A stretch of DNA of 62,900 nucleotides, filler included, from Pelomyxa schiedti (lineage: Eukaryota; Protista; Evosea), in assembly GCA_020536535.1 (NCBI GenBank). It is 5 parts of 5 records of this genome, joined end to end, with 100 filler letters (N's around TTAATTAATTAA, not from the genome) between each part and the next. Parts side by side here need not be neighbours in the genome. Positions count along the whole stretch, not along the records: positions 1 to 29,703 come from JAHLWZ010001009.1; 4 more parts are not named here. One strand, 5' to 3'. Every line of letters starts with the position of its first letter. The stretch's first letter is position 1. This document shows, one piece after another, positions 1 to 24,280 of this stretch. The notes under the pieces were generated by a model. The model worked only from the letters and a program-made list of their open reading frames with translations, did no database searches and was not told the origin of the DNA. Both the position numbers and the translations under genes were made by a program.

Positions 1-120
1 CAAACAAACAAACAAACAAACAAACAAACAAACAAACAAACAAACAAACAAACAAACAAACAAACAAACAAACAAACAAACAAACAAACAAACAAACAAA
101 CAAACAAACAAACAAACAAA
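1..120. repeat. (CAAA)n microsatellite, probably inside an intron of the following gene
   Basis: Perfect CAAA tetranucleotide run from base 1 to 120. Confidence 0.97.
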
Positions 121-194
121 CTAAATCCAGCAGCCACCCCACCCACCCCAACCAACCTCCTTCTAATTTGGCACAATCCCCCACACAACCACAG

Positions 195-4438: not shown

Positions 4439-5045
4439 TGTTTGATCGAATAAAGTGACCTTTCCACTAATGGCCAGTCACTCTGTGTCAGCTCTTCCAC
4501 TTGCTGGTGTTACTGGTTTAAGGTAGGTAGGCCATGGATAACCCGGAGGGTCTCCAGAATGAAAAAAACCTGCATGACTGGGAGGTCCGGCCACCCCTCA
4601 GATAGCAGTGAAATCTCCGAGGAAAACTGCATGTTGTAATTGCATTAGTCCGCACCATTAACGAATGCTGGAAATCGCCTTCTCATCAGTCTTCTGCCAC
4701 CCGGGTTAAAGGAACCGGGGTTTGATCAATTTGAAGAAACAAAACAACACAACAATCTGGGGCGCCACAACCGCTGTGGCCCCTTCCCATCGACCCGTCG
4801 AGCCGTCGTCGTTTCCTTCCGTTTCGTGATAGCCACCCATAATACTACTGTTGCCGAAGGACTCGGAGCGGAAGTTTGTCATTGGCTACCTGTGGTGTCT
4901 GCGCCTATTGCGTGTTGTCTTTTGTCTGTCAACGGGACCCGAAGAGATCGAAGTGTCGGTTGAATCGGCGTTGGGGTTTTTGAATCGCCAATCGTTTTGA
5001 TTGAGGCACCGATTTTGAACACTTATTCTTGGTGATTTTGGGACT

Positions 5046-5629
5046 ATGGGTTGTGGTGCAACTACTGCTACTCATGTGAGCAACAGTTTGTACAATTTGC
5101 AGAGGCAAAACATTGCCCAAGTATGTACTTTGCTATCGCTTTTGTGAAGTAATAATCGAATTCATGAATGTAGAGAGGAGCAGGCTCTGAGCTGGAGAGG
5201 GCTATCGAGGCACATGCCCAGCTGCTTCAGCAGTTGGAAACTCATGTGCGACTTGCCAAGGAAGGCTCTGTCCCTCTAAGTAAGGACTCTATTCGAGTTT
5301 ACCTCTATCTAATTTTGTACTATCACCAACCAGCCTGGGATGATTTTCGCCTTAAATCCAGTGATGATGCTGCCTGCCCTATGGGTCACTGGTTGGGACA
5401 CTCTAGAGGATACTGGTCAACGTGGGACAAGATGGAAGAGCTCCACAACAAGTTTCATACTGGCATTGTAAAGGTTTTCCAACTTTTTTATTGGCCTTCA
5501 AATTAACAAAAGGCTAAGGTAATGGATGTCGCGCAATCGAGTCCCAACCGCGGCAGAGACCTTTTACAAATGGGAGACTTGATGGATACAAGCCAAGAGT
5601 TATTGGTTCTTCTTAAGAAGTGCCGATGA
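5046..5629 (+). CDS. Stand-alone CZB (chemoreceptor zinc-binding)-like domain protein with N-terminal MGC acylation motif; 4 exons, about 143 aa
   Basis: Removing introns 5121-5173, 5280-5333 and 5468-5512 gives MGCGA...AIEAHAQ...DDAACPMGHWL...LHNKFH...GDLMDTSQELL, i.e. the His / CxxGxW / HxxxH ligand pattern. Confidence 0.72.
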
Positions 5630-5946
5630 GTTACCCACAATTTTCGAGAGGTTGCAGAGATTGTAGGGTGTGCATGAAAGCTTTTTTTTTTTGTTACCAA
5701 CATTTTCACAGTAATATCGGGAAAAGCTCTGTACTTGTATGTGGGGTGTTGTGGGACAAAGTGCGAATCCAAGTATCTTTGGGTCACCAGTTTTTTTTAA
5801 AGAATCAAAAAATTTTCTTCTGATTACATCCATTGCCTACCCGCCAACTAAGGGTGCTCAACTCAACAAGGAAAACGAACAAGGGAGGAATGTATCGTAA
5901 AACCAAACTTTTTTTTTTACTTTGGTTGACTGCTGTGGGAGAAGTT

Positions 5947-14831: not shown

Positions 14832-16668
14832 CTATTCAGCCAAGTCTTCAGGTTGGTTTCTGCCAACAGAACCATCATCCCCACCTCTTCTTCCCCTTGC
14901 TCTGCCCCTGCCTCGGCCCCTACCCCTCCCGTCCCCTCTCCCTCTTCCTCTGCCTCTCCATTCGCTGCCCTCATCGTTATCTCCCCCTCCTCCCCCTCCC
15001 CTTCCCCCTCTCCCTCTGCCTCCTCCTCCTCCTCGCCCTCCCCTGCCTCTGTACTGGCCCCCTCCTCTGCCTCTCCACCCCCCGCTCTCCTCGCCGCCTG
15101 CCGCGGGAGTGTCCGTGGCAGTGCCGCCTCCGCAGCAAGCTAATCCCCGCATGAATCGCTCAGCGTTGTTGGCCGGCCCCGTGCCGCCCCTGGCTCCCCA
15201 GCCCCCCCCTCGCCCTCTCATCACCTGCGCCACCGGGCTCTCTGCCTCCCCTCGTATGACCCTGCGCCAGTCGAACGCCTCCGTGTTGGCGTAGGCGGCG
15301 GCAGTGGAGTTCTCCTGGTCGCCCTCGGCTCCCCTGGCCCCGTAGTTGTAGCTGCCCCACCCGCGGTCGACTCCGCGGGTCATGCGGCGCCTCCCGATGT
15401 ATATCTTGGTGGGTATCTTGCCTCTTGTGGCGGCCTGTGCAGCGGAAGTAGCCGGCTTGAGAGGCCTGGAGAGTTCACGTGGCTTTGGCTTCTGTGGGCA
15501 CAGCATCTTTGTGTGGCCTGCTGCGCCGCACTGGCTACACACTGTGGCAGAATGCCCTAGGCAATGTTAAGGGGCACGAATTCTGTGGAAATAGAAAGTT
15601 CAAGGTATACCATCTCCAATCAGTGGCTTCGGGCAGTTATCTCTGTTGTGATCCTTCTCTCCACAGTTCCAACAGGTCAAATCAGAGGAAATATATGGTT
15701 TCTTTTTGGTAATCTCTACAATGAGGTTCCTGAATCCAAAAGTTTTTCTGTTGTAGAGATAGATGATGTTCTTGGCTGCATGCAAGCTGCCCAACTCAAT
15801 AAACGCAAACCTTTGTCACATTAACCGCTGTGGAAAATGAAAGCGTGGGTTTGGGTTTGCACACCCTCTATTTGTACCAGGTTTGTCCATAGATGGAAGC
15901 ACCCGAATGTTTAAAACTTTTGGTACATCATGGAAACGTTTCTTTAAGTCGTCTGCCGTATACTCTGGCGGAATATTCTTGACTATGACAGTTGTTGGAA
16001 TATCAGGTTCAGCTTCCGGCGGACCTCTCTTCTTTCCAGCAAGAGTCTAACATGACACGTTAGAACAAGTTAAGATGGAATTAAATATGATTCTAGATTT
16101 AATAGCACAAACTCTTGTACAATTGCCCTACCTCGTCATTGGAATCTTCACTATCCTCCCCCCCCTGTGCGTTGGACTCATCTTCCTCTTTCTCTTTATC
16201 CTTATCATCATTAGTTGTGCCGGTTGTGCCGGGTTTCTCAGATTCCTCCTGGTGGTCTCGTCCTTCACCCTGTGTCTCCGATGCGGACTTGGTAGTGGGT
16301 TTGGTCTTGGACTTTGCATCTCTCTCGCGCTCGTTCACCTTGTCATTAGGCCCAGTCAAGGAAGCTGCTGCTGCTGCTGCTGCTTGTGATAATGACTCAG
16401 GGATTGGAGGGGCAGGGGATGGTGATGTCGCCGGCATGCTTCCGCAAGGGATGAAGTCCGCGCCATCAGAAAATAGAACGAAATTGGAGGCCATAGCGGC
16501 AATCTCCTGCAGCTGGCGTGTGGCCTTGTCCATGTTCCTCGCGATGTCCGCTCCATCACCAACGTCGACGCCCCTGCTGCCGCCGCTACCAATTGCGCCA
16601 CGACTGCTACTCGTGGGGGGTGGTAGATTTTCGTTGTTGGCAGCTGCGACGTCACTAGAACCGGGCAC
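14832..16668 (-). CDS. RNA-binding protein: RRM, two CCHC zinc knuckles and an RGG-rich tail (start uncertain)
   Basis: RNP2-like VIVKNIP, RNP1-like GFAFIEL, CWNCGEKDHNRDNC, CSQCGAAGHTKMLC, RGG repeats. Confidence 0.8.
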
Positions 16669-20478: not shown

Positions 20479-23400
20479 TTAGTCTCTCCTTTCCACAAGA
20501 AGGTAACTTAGAGCTTTGAGAATGGTCCCATCACTCATTGGACACAACAGTACCCCAGATAACTCCTGTGCCAAAAGTGCTTGAAACTTAGTGAGACTTC
20601 CACCAGGGAGTCCATGTTGACATTGTGGGAGAAATGGTTCCAATGGGGCATGGTCTCGGAGAACACATGGTGATATAGCCCGGAACCAGTTTTCATGGTC
20701 AAGCCACTTGATTCCTCCATTTGTGTTTGATTCCACGAATTTTGCGGCAACTTCTATTAGGTGTGAGAATGATACATTGGAGAACCGGAGGTCAATAATG
20801 ATTCCTCCAGCTCTTGACTCGAGCTCTTTTGGGTTTCTTAATGCACACTTGGAGATGATGTCTGCACATGCATCCACTGGAATCATGGTTATGCCGTATT
20901 CCACCTGCGGTGATGAGACCTGGGAACTTCGCGTTGAGTGATTGGGAAGTGCGGATTCGGGGAAGAGTCTGTAAGTGACAATTGAGTGCAATAACCTCCA
21001 CAGTGTATCCCGGGAGTTGCATTTTCCAGTTGTGCTGTTTGGTCCTAAGAGTGGTGACCTGTATATAAATACTTGGAGAGCAGGAAATTCAGTTTTGGCT
21101 CTCTGAAGTAACGAGTCTGAAACCCATTTACTTTGGGCATAACCAGAACCTTGTTCCTCGCTAGTGCCAATAGCGTATACAGCCGCGGATGAGACATAGT
21201 GCAGCGTCTTGGTGGGGTATGTGCAAACACACAATTCCACTATTTGCAACAATCCTCCAACATTGGAAGTGTACAAATCGCGCAATGGGAGGAGATGGTT
21301 GACACATGCCGCAGTGTGTATGACCACATCTACCTCACGTTGTAGTAATTCATATTCTTGCTCTTTTAGGCCAAGGTTCTTCTTCCTAATATCACCAAGA
21401 AGAAATTTCACTTGTTCATTCCCAGAACAGGGAACTCTTTTTGTCAGGCAGTAAATAGTAGCAGAAGGGAAAGCTTTAAGAACCGAGGGTATAAGCTGTG
21501 AACCAAGGAACCCCTGTGCCCCAGTAATAAGTACACCTTTTCTTTGGGGTTCTGTACTGGAGGAAGCCAGATTCTTGTTCAACTGAAGGCGGGCTTTTAG
21601 AGTTGACCACTCTTTCTCCAAGGTAGCTTTAAAGTCATCGGCCAGTTTTGGTGCTGTTTCCATACTCCCGCATCTAAGTCGGTGATTTAGCTCAGTAATG
21701 GAAGATGTTGTGAGATCGTCAAAAGAGATATCAATAGATAAAGCCCTCAACTCAGTTAAAAGCCTCACAGCAGAAAAGGAGCTTCCTCCGGCTTCCAGTA
21801 GGGTAAGATCTTGTGCTCCCGTTTCGCACCCTTTGAATGCAGTGTGCAGTACTTGATCGAGGTAAAGAGAGCGTATGATTTGCTGGTATTTTTGGTAAAT
21901 ATATCGCCGATTCAATTTTCCTGCAGGAGTGAGGCACTGATTTTCAGCAGTCCATTGCGCATCATGCGCTTCAATGTGGAATGCACAAGGTACTTCACAA
22001 TTCCTGAGCCCGAGAATATTGAGCTGCTTACTCAAATAATCTACTGTCACGTTCTGATTCCAGTTAGTGAGATAAAATAAATTACCGAAAATGTCAAACC
22101 ATTTGACTACGTGAAGAAGGAACAATGATCGCAACGGTTCTTGGCTTTGAAGAGTCGGCATAAGCTACAGCTTGGTGAACGCCATCAATTGTCAGAATCC
22201 CTTGTTCAATGTGCTCTAAAGCCACGAACTCACCACCACTCAGTTTCACAACGTTGTTCTTTCTATCAATAACGCGAACACAACCAGGGGAGTATATCTC
22301 GCCAATATCGCCTGTATGGAACCATCCATCACTATCAAATACAATTCTCTCTTGAGATAGGTAACGCTTGCACCGTGCCTCAGAGATTTGAATCAAAATC
22401 TCCCCTTGAGGTGGATTTCCATTTGCAAAGTATTCTTTGAATACAAATTATTTTGAAAGAAAAGATTATGAGGCAATACCAAGTTCCGGAATCGATATTA
22501 GCTTCACTGGTGTTGTTAATCTTCCATTCAAAGCTATTGATCCAGCTTCAGTTGTTCCATATCCCTCATTCACAGGAATTTTCAGAACTTTTCTCAGGAA
22601 TCTCAACAAGTTATCCGTTACAGGCGCAGAGGAAACTTTCACACTGCATACTCTCCCTCCAAGAGCACGGTTACGGATCTGCTTGCGGGCTGCCACTTTT
22701 CCTTCAGCTTTATCCCCCACATAAGACTGTTTCAACGAGCGATACAACTCATGAATTGTATGACACAGCAGAGGCACGGCAACAAGGGTGGTAGGACGAA
22801 CGATTGCGGTCGTATCAAGGACTGAAGGAGCGTGCGGTGTAAATACTATCCTTCCACCATTAAATAGCGATGTGTACAAGTCGGTCCTTCCAGCTATATG
22901 GCACAAAGGGAGGTATCCATGAAGAACGCACAATTTCAAAGGAAGTGATAATTTGAGGTGCTCAAGCCATGCAGAGTCATCAAAAATAGCACCTCTCGGT
23001 GTTCCAGTGCTGCCACTTGTGTAGACAACTGTCAATGTATCCACAGGTTTTGCTGGCTTTGGGTGGAAAGGCATCATTCTTAAGTGCACTGGAATTTCCT
23101 GCAGAGAATTAAGTAATTCAAAGTGACACAAGGAAAACACCTCACATAACTGGTCAAGCAAAGTGATCGTATGTGTTGAAGGTGCAGAGAATTTTGGAGG
23201 TGCATTGCAGAGCACTACGCGAACGCCCATTGGTATCAATCCTGATAACTATCTTCATGTCAATGGAAGAAGGGATCAGAGAAAGTGAGAACCTTCTCCA
23301 ATAATGTAGCCTCGAGAAATAATACACTCAAATTCGCCCCACATCTCATGAGGGCTTGGAATTCATCAACTGAAAGTGTTGGGGAAATGGGGACAGATAC

Positions 23401-24280
23401 ATATGACTGGAAAATGCAGGCAAAGTCTATGGCTGCCCATAACCCAGAATTATGCAAGCATATACCAACAAATTGGCCACGCTGCATCCCTGCGTGTGCC
23501 AAGCCGAGAGAAATATCAACAGAAAGTGAATGTATGGCACCATATGTTTGCCAGTTGATCGAAACTGAATTTGGAGGTATTTCCCCGACAAAGTATCGTT
23601 GTTTGTAATGTGTCAAACATTCATGCACTACTTCGGCACAACTCTTCTTGGCAGAAATTTCAGATTTAATAGCCCAGCGAGGTAATTCCTGGGGGTAGAA
23701 GAAGTCTACACCTCCTTGTGATAACATGTTATATTTTTGTTGTGAGCGTGTAGGTACCATGTCTGTGGCTGCCTTTGCCACTGGAATAGCACTGAGAGCA
23801 CACACAGTACTCAAAGCAGTCACCACAGGAGTATTTACGGAATTCACCAAAGAAGCTTGCAGAACACTGCATGCATTCCCCAGGTTCTCTAAAGTTTTCG
23901 ATCCTTTCGGGATGCTTTTTCTTCATCCTCATTTGTAGCCTGGAATTCTCCTTCTCGGCCGGAGTTGGCTCCAACTCTATAGGAATCACTTTCGTCAGTT
24001 ACAACACAACGGGTATGAGCCCGGCACCTACTGAGATGAGGAGGGCTTGGCATCTCAACATGCGAATGAGGATCATTTTTCTCAGGAACAGAAGCTGACA
24101 ATAACTTGGGGCCAACATCCCCACGACCGGTGGAGAACACAATTCCACTCCTTTTCATCCTACGAACCAACATTTCCAACTTTTCTTCTGCAAATTTTGT
24201 TGGAACAAAGCTTGTTGGGACGACAACAACAAAAGAAAGCAGCACACAATTTACCTGTGGTCAAGGGTCTCGACCACCAT
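20479..24280 (-). CDS. Carboxylic-acid-reductase-like NRPS-like enzyme (adenylation, thiolation, thioester reductase) with an N-terminal ZZ-type zinc finger; start uncertain
   Basis: A domain YTSGSTGTPRG, GYGTTEAG, FHTGDI, DRKNNVVKLSGGEFV; T domain GGSSFSA; R domain ITGAQGFLG and GYAQSKW; ZZ-like CxxC...CxxCxxxxxCxxC...HxH joined in frame by a GT-AG intron. Confidence 0.85.

Follow-up and report, generated by a model that had tools for sequence, protein, structure and literature searches.

CZB domains are built around a zinc-thiolate site of three histidines and one cysteine (3His/1Cys). They are known from 21 bacterial phyla and have been regarded as essentially all bacterial, with no credible eukaryotic member known so far; the single eukaryotic match in the most thorough survey of the family was dismissed as contamination (PMC8262984). 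In two bacterial proteins, DgcZ and TlpD, the domain has been described to relax when zinc is lost or the cysteine is oxidized (PMC8262984). Our full-text literature search found no paper in which CZB is connected with Archamoebae, with protists or with eukaryotic gene transfer, and none that reports a genuine eukaryotic CZB domain.

In DgcZ (YdeH) of Escherichia coli (PDB 3T9O and 4H54), a cytosolic protein, CZB is fused to a GGDEF output domain. TlpD of Helicobacter pylori, a sensor of HOCl and zinc, carries CZB at the C-terminus of a soluble chemoreceptor that signals via CheA and CheW. A "CZB-only" subgroup forms part of cluster III (Perkins et al. 2021). Here, we analyzed Pelo_15370, a gene of the amoeba Pelomyxa schiedti that lies within a 62,900-nucleotide stretch of DNA (referred to as the window). 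Its product shares with DgcZ the ligand register and a helical bundle of similar size, but it has no output domain and begins with a predicted acylation signal. By family definition, its predicted site has the same zinc-thiolate chemistry as that of TlpD (PMC8262984), a comparison made by literature only, as TlpD was not among the matches of our searches. The amoeba is without a CheA/CheW pathway. The nearest non-eukaryotic relatives, bacterial CZB-only proteins such as the "CZB domain-containing protein" WP_294995590.1 of Sulfuritalea sp. (tandem, 274 residues), likewise have no output domain. In contrast to Pelo_15370, bacterial CZB-only relatives are intron-less, contain two tandem domains and have no Met-Gly-Cys, with an identity of ~25-30%.

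The N-terminus of Pelo_15370 has the Gly2, Cys3 and Ser/Thr6 of the SH4-type signal of Lck, Fyn and Gα-i/o. SH4 signals sit on a kinase or a G protein, whereas in Pelo_15370 the predicted signal sits on a bacterial-type sensor domain. Judged from sequence, what appears to be new is that CZB, a known domain, occurs in eukaryotes and that it does so in a new architecture, a predicted lipid-anchor signal followed by a stand-alone CZB domain. Such a protein would represent a eukaryotic re-engineering, with a predicted lipid anchor where bacteria have a fused output domain, and it would give the CZB field a minimal, output-free, putatively membrane-tethered version of the sensor.

Gene structure and transcripts of Pelo_15370

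The gene sits on a 29.7-kb contig (C1009) of an assembly of 52.4 Mb in 5337 contigs. P. schiedti is an anaerobic archamoeba with a genome obtained from single cells, in which 98.4% of introns are GT-AG and genes have 7.4 introns each (PMC8887013). Exon-by-exon translation of the four coding exons (Table 1) yields the 143-residue protein of the initial annotation. This protein is identical to an NCBI entry of the same length, "hypothetical protein Pelo_15370 [Pelomyxa schiedti]" (P0001 in our searches), the sole match of a word search with the stop-free segment 5174-5473. The sequence of P0001 corresponds to the translations of exons 1 to 4 placed one after another, and the split codon encodes Thr61. 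We used P0001 for all full-length analyses and ran Pfam on the exons one by one.

Table 1. Coordinates of Pelo_15370, of related loci and of other features. Positions refer to the window unless a contig or locus is named.
Feature	Location	Strand	Description
5'UTR	4800-5045	+	Minimum extent; RNA contigs colinear from 4800/4836 to 5120
Exon 1	5046-5120	+	25 codons; MGCGAT, with Gly2 at 5049-5051, Cys3 at 5052-5054 and Thr6; then variable linker
Intron 1	5121-5173	+	53 nt, GT..AG, phase 0; three RNA runs show joint 5120>5174
Exon 2	5174-5279	+	106 nt; AIEAH, CZB helix α1; first predicted zinc ligand His39, codon 5213-5215
Intron 2	5280-5333	+	54 nt, GT..AG, phase 1, one residue ahead of conserved Trp62; joint 5279>5334
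Exon 3	5334-5473	+	CZB core; CPMGHWL with Cys75 at 5375-5377; HNKFH with His98 at 5444-5446 and His102 at 5456-5458
Intron 3	5474-5518	+	45 nt, GT..AG, phase 0; joint 5473>5519 in three RNA runs
Exon 4, coding part	5519-5629	+	C-terminal bundle helices; stop TGA 5627-5629
3'UTR	5630-5783	+	Minimum extent; RNA contigs run into library adapter at 5739-5783
Intron 4, in 3'UTR	5668-5711	+	44 nt, GT..AG; joint 5667>5712
Fourth paralogue	G000:C833:35277-35624 (L010 ~1489-2082)	-	Upstream MGCTAS; AIELH, CEFGCWL, HVAFH
Possible fragment	G000:C660:31533-31622 (L013)	+	Weak match (E 0.0016) to the α1 part, at contig end
Metagenomic members (ENA ERZ21831265)	L003 3769-4474; L004 3776-4309; L015 9721-10258; L016 7095-7361
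NMT exons (PF01233)	G000:C972:26008-26431
CAAA array	1-121		Contig opens with 30 perfect copies
GC-skewed segment	12000-14000		Strong negative GC skew (-0.24 to -0.35) across 2 kb
Pyrimidine tract	14981-15051		CCTCCC type
AMP-binding/reductase pieces	20479-23850	-	AMP-binding pieces, then an NAD_binding_4 (terminal reductase) ORF
NKAP ORF	26325-28079	+	Single ORF of 585 aa; NKAP C-terminal domain, 163 bits

We compared the gene with RNA contigs from three single-cell RNA-seq runs of one study. The RNA contig of each run aligns to the window as five blocks, and a DNA run is colinear with the window across the gene. The three canonical introns initially proposed, all GT..AG, were confirmed to the nucleotide by the RNA contigs of all three runs; because the RNA joints match the earlier model, its junctions are exactly those used. 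An additional intron in the 3'UTR, 38 nt past the stop, was missing from that model and is removed in three of three runs. An alternative in-frame acceptor for intron 3, at 5512, was ruled out, as transcripts and paralogues both speak for 5519. Intron 2 is in frame and stop-free and thus also reads as an open reading frame. The coding introns are AT-richer than the exons.

The transcripts also settle the N-terminus. One RNA contig reaches ~58 nt further 5' than position 4800, giving a transcribed leader of at least 300 nt, and we found no ATG in the leader (4742-5045). An in-frame TGA is present at 5016-5018, 10 codons 5' of the ATG at 5046, and the 5'UTR has no intron, the RNA contigs being unspliced back to at least 4800. 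Since the first ATG of the transcript is preceded by an in-frame stop and an intron-free leader, the protein begins with Met-Gly-Cys, in agreement with the MGCG start that had been read initially.

Pelo_15370 is a real, expressed and spliced eukaryotic gene, as originally supposed: its introns are spliceosomal, its transcripts are spliced, and its contig also bears NKAP along with further eukaryotic genes. The assembly was made from amplified single cells in polyxenic culture, and the amoeba has bacterial endosymbionts, so an artefact (a bacterial contaminant, a chance open reading frame or a pseudogene) has to be weighed. We regard this as extremely improbable. Four spliceosomal introns are removed in the transcripts of three runs, the ligand residues are conserved, and intact paralogues lie on contigs of up to 167 kb. 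Moreover, the eukaryote-specific genes on the same 29.7-kb contig, which bears NKAP, an LRR gene and an intron-split AMP-binding/reductase gene, exclude bacterial contamination.

The CZB domain, its family and its origin

The Pfam profile for CZB (PF13682) matched P0001 with an E value of 8e-6 over profile positions 27-63 only. For the CZB domain named in the initial annotation, the score of this copy was 26.6 bits, slightly below the gathering cut-off of 29.4 bits. The motif H...CPMGHW...HNKFH, recognized at the outset, is present in exons 2 and 3, and exon 3 alone scored 27.5 bits (E 4e-6), which places the motif far past chance. The precomputed Pfam tag of P0001 in the source database, its only annotation, is PF13682.12. 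Nothing else credible was found by Pfam in the 143 residues, which upheld the view of a stand-alone domain. The Pfam score of Pelo_15370 itself is borderline, and it is the relatives that are decisive: Pelo_16838 reached 39.9 bits over the whole profile, the Mastigamoeba protein 60.3, and the metagenomic members P0005, P0010 and P0011 had 32.4, 32.6 and 31.6 bits, respectively. Pelo_10333 scored 19.4 bits, which is below the cut-off.

Residues H39, C75, H98 and H102 of Pelo_15370 align with H22, C52, H79 and H83 of DgcZ. The family alignment shows no variation at C75, W80, H98 and H102, and H39 (in AIEAH) is present wherever the region is covered; a Trp three residues past the first His is replaced by Leu in Pelo_15370. 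The segment between α1 and the Cys is 6 residues longer than in DgcZ. Perkins et al. (2021) recognize CZB domains by (i) the 3His/1Cys core, (ii) the motif CX(L/F)GXW(Y/L) and (iii-iv) domain coverage with a sound alignment. Ligands, coverage and alignment are all found in Pelo_15370, with one conservative deviation in the motif (C-P-M-G-H-W-L), in which Met replaces Leu/Phe and the remainder fits. The motif is exact in Pelo_16838 (CEFGKWL), in the paralogue on contig C833 (CEFGCWL), in the metagenomic loci L003 and L015 and in Mastigamoeba, and Pelo_10333 departs from it (CPMSRWI).

Profile searches gave the same assignment. A profile made from eukaryotic members only had the DgcZ CZB domain (3T9O) as its best match in the PDB (E 1.4e-4, chain residues 12-92), with the four ligands in register, and hhalign aligned it to bacterial CZB with a probability of 99.05% (E 2.1e-18, 112 columns). 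With bacterial CZB-only proteins, the 99% hhalign match covers the whole domain, including the C-terminal helix past the Pfam core, and the exon 4 product aligns with these proteins to the C-terminus. All 30 of the 30 nearest ESM-Atlas clusters are bacterial CZB proteins of 118-175 residues. A single-sequence phmmer search of the PDB with P0001 returned chance matches only (Alba and coronavirus nsp1, E > 0.01). The full 3His/1Cys set aligned to DgcZ and the hhalign result bear out the CZB identity first suggested. We conclude from these alignments that the Pelo_15370 product is a complete stand-alone CZB domain (residues ~31-143) with a predicted 3His/1Cys site at H39/C75/H98/H102.

The AF2 model of P0001 is an all-helical bundle (pLDDT 87, pTM 0.75). 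The pLDDT exceeds 90 from residue 31, and the N-terminal 30 residues are of low confidence, giving a layout of MGCGAT signal, ~25-residue low-confidence linker and CZB four-helix-bundle domain. Comparison of the model with 3T9O_B yielded an rmsd of 2.7 over 110 of 120 residues and a Z of 10.6, a value usual among helical bundles. In the VIA structure comparison, four-helix bundles of chemoreceptors and NarQ (Z 11-12.5) outranked the CZB domain of DgcZ. Therefore, the fold alone cannot assign the family. Foldseek against the PDB gave no match at E ≤ 0.001 (E 0.34), with PsbQ and other bundles ranking alongside DgcZ, and an ESM-Atlas shape search did not separate CZB from other four-helix bundles.

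An exhaustive phmmer search with P0001 over 1.84 billion cluster representatives returned 13 proteins. We rejected four of them (P0004, P0006, P0007 and P0009) as spurious: they are long, of repeat or low-complexity type, and have no Pfam CZB match or align in the linker only. The true relatives are Pelo_10333, which is the closest paralogue (51% identical), Pelo_16838, one protein of Mastigamoeba balamuthi, three metagenomic proteins and bacterial tandem CZB proteins. Bacterial CZB-only proteins, from Sulfuritalea sp. and one other, were the first non-eukaryotic true matches (E 3e-6). A word-index profile search found no further family members.

We then scanned the P. schiedti genome with the family profile. 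The scan found the window gene, Pelo_16838 on contig C1199, Pelo_10333 on C794 and a fourth locus on C833, so that P. schiedti has at least four CZB paralogues; the splicing of the other three was deduced from sequence only. In the C833 paralogue, what looks like an intron separates the Cys motif from the HxxxH helix, at a position where the other copies have none. We found no database protein that matches it, and it may therefore be unannotated or mis-modelled. A further match, on contig C660, may represent a fifth, truncated copy.

The metagenomic members belong to an AT-rich eukaryote (ERZ21831265) with at least three MGC-CZB loci plus a haplotype copy and with introns of 33-44 nt. Their contigs are 19-144 kb long and also encode eIF2-beta, SRP54, DAGAT, cyclin and SNAP. 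Prokaryote-style gene calls in this assembly fragment the genes and miss the first exons of the CZB genes. A search with the cyclin neighbour returned only its own haplotype, and the SRP54 exon is 55-63% identical to that of Pelomyxa, a value that is not diagnostic.

The M. balamuthi protein (EP00727_P006315, here P0012; 254 residues) likewise comes from an archamoeba and has all four ligands of the CZB site. Unlike Pelo_15370, it has two tandem CZB repeats and starts with MGIQ. Its repeats are near-identical to each other, which suggests that they arose very recently by internal duplication or as an artefact of assembly or gene model, independently of the bacterial tandem arrangement.

Intron positions bear on the age of the gene. 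Intron 1 (phase 0, 13-14 residues before the first His) has the same position in the window gene, Pelo_10333, L004 and L015, and intron 2, of phase 1 and one residue ahead of the conserved Trp, is common to three Pelomyxa paralogues, L004 and L015. Exon 2 of the window gene and that of L015 are each 106 nt long. Intron 3 is common only to the window gene and Pelo_10333; Pelo_16838 is without it and reads through. Because intron positions are common to both organisms, these introns predate the split of the two organisms, or the gene passed between them. On this evidence, Pelomyxa did not acquire its CZB gene recently. The eukaryotic CZB family also cannot be contamination, given its introns, its spliced transcripts, its paralogues and the intron positions common across species.

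The initial annotation had inferred lateral acquisition from bacteria. The patchy distribution is in line with it: across the 1.84 billion representatives, eukaryotic members came from three sources only (P. schiedti, M. balamuthi and the one metagenomic eukaryote), against a huge bacterial family. In a small maximum-likelihood tree, the Pelomyxa paralogues group together (80/87), one branch splits the eukaryotic from the bacterial rows (88/93), and the Mastigamoeba member is on a very long branch. The tree holds only two bacterial proteins (four domains), the sole ones close enough to align; it is therefore silent on the donor and, beyond the split itself, carries no information on nesting.

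The same split, together with the intron positions common to two eukaryotes, which amount to inheritance or transfer at the eukaryotic level, speaks for an alternative, in which an ancient eukaryotic gene or passage from one eukaryote to another takes the place of acquisition from bacteria by the Pelomyxa lineage. We consider this very improbable, as a gene of that age would have needed very many losses to leave three eukaryotic sources in an exhaustive search, and the 21 bacterial phyla with CZB stand against no credible eukaryotic member previously (PMC8262984). The distribution fits a lateral bacterial origin of the eukaryotic CZB genes. A single transfer may have brought a bacterial CZB-only gene into an ancestor of these amoebae, where it would have gained introns, acquired the lipid signal and been duplicated. 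Bacterial genes are not rare in Archamoebae. Since these amoebae are known to hold many of them, the surprise is limited, and the CZB gene would be a clean case of the domestication of a laterally acquired bacterial sensor.

Predicted lipid-anchor signal and proposed function

Lck, Fyn and Gα-i have as their signal Met-Gly-Cys followed by Ser/Thr at position 6. Ser/Thr at this position is the classical preference of NMT, and Pro6 is unfavourable. We read the upstream exons where gene callers had missed them and compared the N-termini of the family. In Pelomyxa, two genes start with MGCGAT, one with MGCGAP and one with MGCTAS; in the metagenomic eukaryote, two start with MGCGAS and one with MGCAAS. 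The lipid-type MGC motif highlighted in the initial annotation is thus kept in all seven Pelomyxa and metagenomic genes, in the form M-G-C-x-A-[S/T/P]. The 15-60 residues that follow are unalignable among family members, which indicates that the motif itself is under selection. The P. schiedti genome contains exons for NMT (Table 1) and at least 12 loci for DHHC enzymes (PF01529). Src-family kinases require Met-Gly-Cys for palmitoylation-dependent targeting to membrane domains, and the motif is also sufficient for it (PMC2200018). These data suggest that MGCGAT is a Src/Gα-type signal, with predicted myristoylation of Gly2 and palmitoylation of Cys3, that would target the protein to a membrane.

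Alternatively, the protein could be soluble and non-acylated, with Met-Gly-Cys kept as a metal or redox thiol, for N-terminal stability or as translation context. Such a reading would accommodate Pro6 in Pelo_10333 and the Mastigamoeba member, which is without Cys3. We consider it improbable nonetheless, given a motif that persists in 7/7 genes next to an unalignable linker, Ser/Thr at position 6 in 6/7, and the NMT and DHHC genes of the amoeba.

We propose that the Pelo_15370 product, probably of lateral origin and domesticated long ago, is probably a zinc-thiolate switch that is tethered to a membrane, responds to zinc or an oxidant and acts in trans. In this model, Gly2 would be N-myristoylated by the NMT of the amoeba and Cys3 S-palmitoylated by a DHHC enzyme, and the dual acylation would tether CZB to the cytosolic face of a membrane via the flexible linker. 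The domain would bind one Zn2+ at the zinc-thiolate site, in the manner of DgcZ and TlpD. If zinc were lost or Cys75 oxidized, the bundle, and probably also a dimer, would loosen, and this would alter binding to a separate membrane partner. Because no output domain is fused to CZB, the signal would have to go to a separate partner.

The lack of an output domain, together with the lack of a conserved partner gene, could also mean that the zinc is only structural, or that the protein is a buffer or chaperone, that is, a membrane-tethered zinc store, handler or scaffold without signalling. The extremely high zinc affinity of bacterial CZB domains would suit a store or a structural site (PMC8262984), and the existence of four paralogues is suggestive of a role in dosage or bulk. 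However, the CZB site is regulatory in every characterized case (DgcZ and TlpD; PMC8262984), one site per 143 residues makes a poor buffer, and conservation reaches the α3 motif around the Cys, the region that moves on oxidation. A purely structural or storage role is therefore unlikely in our view, though less so than a soluble protein, and we favor the membrane-tethered switch.

P. schiedti is a free-living strict anaerobe, so zinc or O2-derived oxidants are likelier signals than HOCl. As the natural signal of the Pelomyxa CZB domain, HOCl is doubtful, and zinc or oxidants of the O2/peroxide type are more plausible. The protein is thus a candidate zinc/oxidant sensor in strict anaerobes, in which oxygen-avoidance signalling is almost unknown. 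More tentatively, the whole group may be a eukaryote-specific family of lipid-anchored CZB proteins: a bacterial zinc-thiolate sensor domain, captured by an ancestor of anaerobic amoebae, could have gained a myristoyl/palmitoyl anchor and introns, multiplied, and become a membrane-tethered, trans-acting switch that reports zinc status or the intrusion of oxidant (oxygen) to a eukaryotic partner. If true, this would be a signalling architecture without a described counterpart in either domain of life.

Other features of the window

Several further features were observed on the contig of Pelo_15370 (Table 1). The AMP-binding and NAD_binding_4 pieces look like an intron-split gene of the carboxylic-acid/aminoadipate-reductase type, possibly a further bacterial- or fungal-type candidate. 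The NKAP open reading frame is a eukaryote-specific marker for the contig, and its upstream part is GC-rich (58-61%) and repeat-bearing, with a strong A-over-T skew. In addition to the skewed segment and the pyrimidine tract, the contig has the CAAA array at its start, possibly a microsatellite or else a repeat from a chromosome end.
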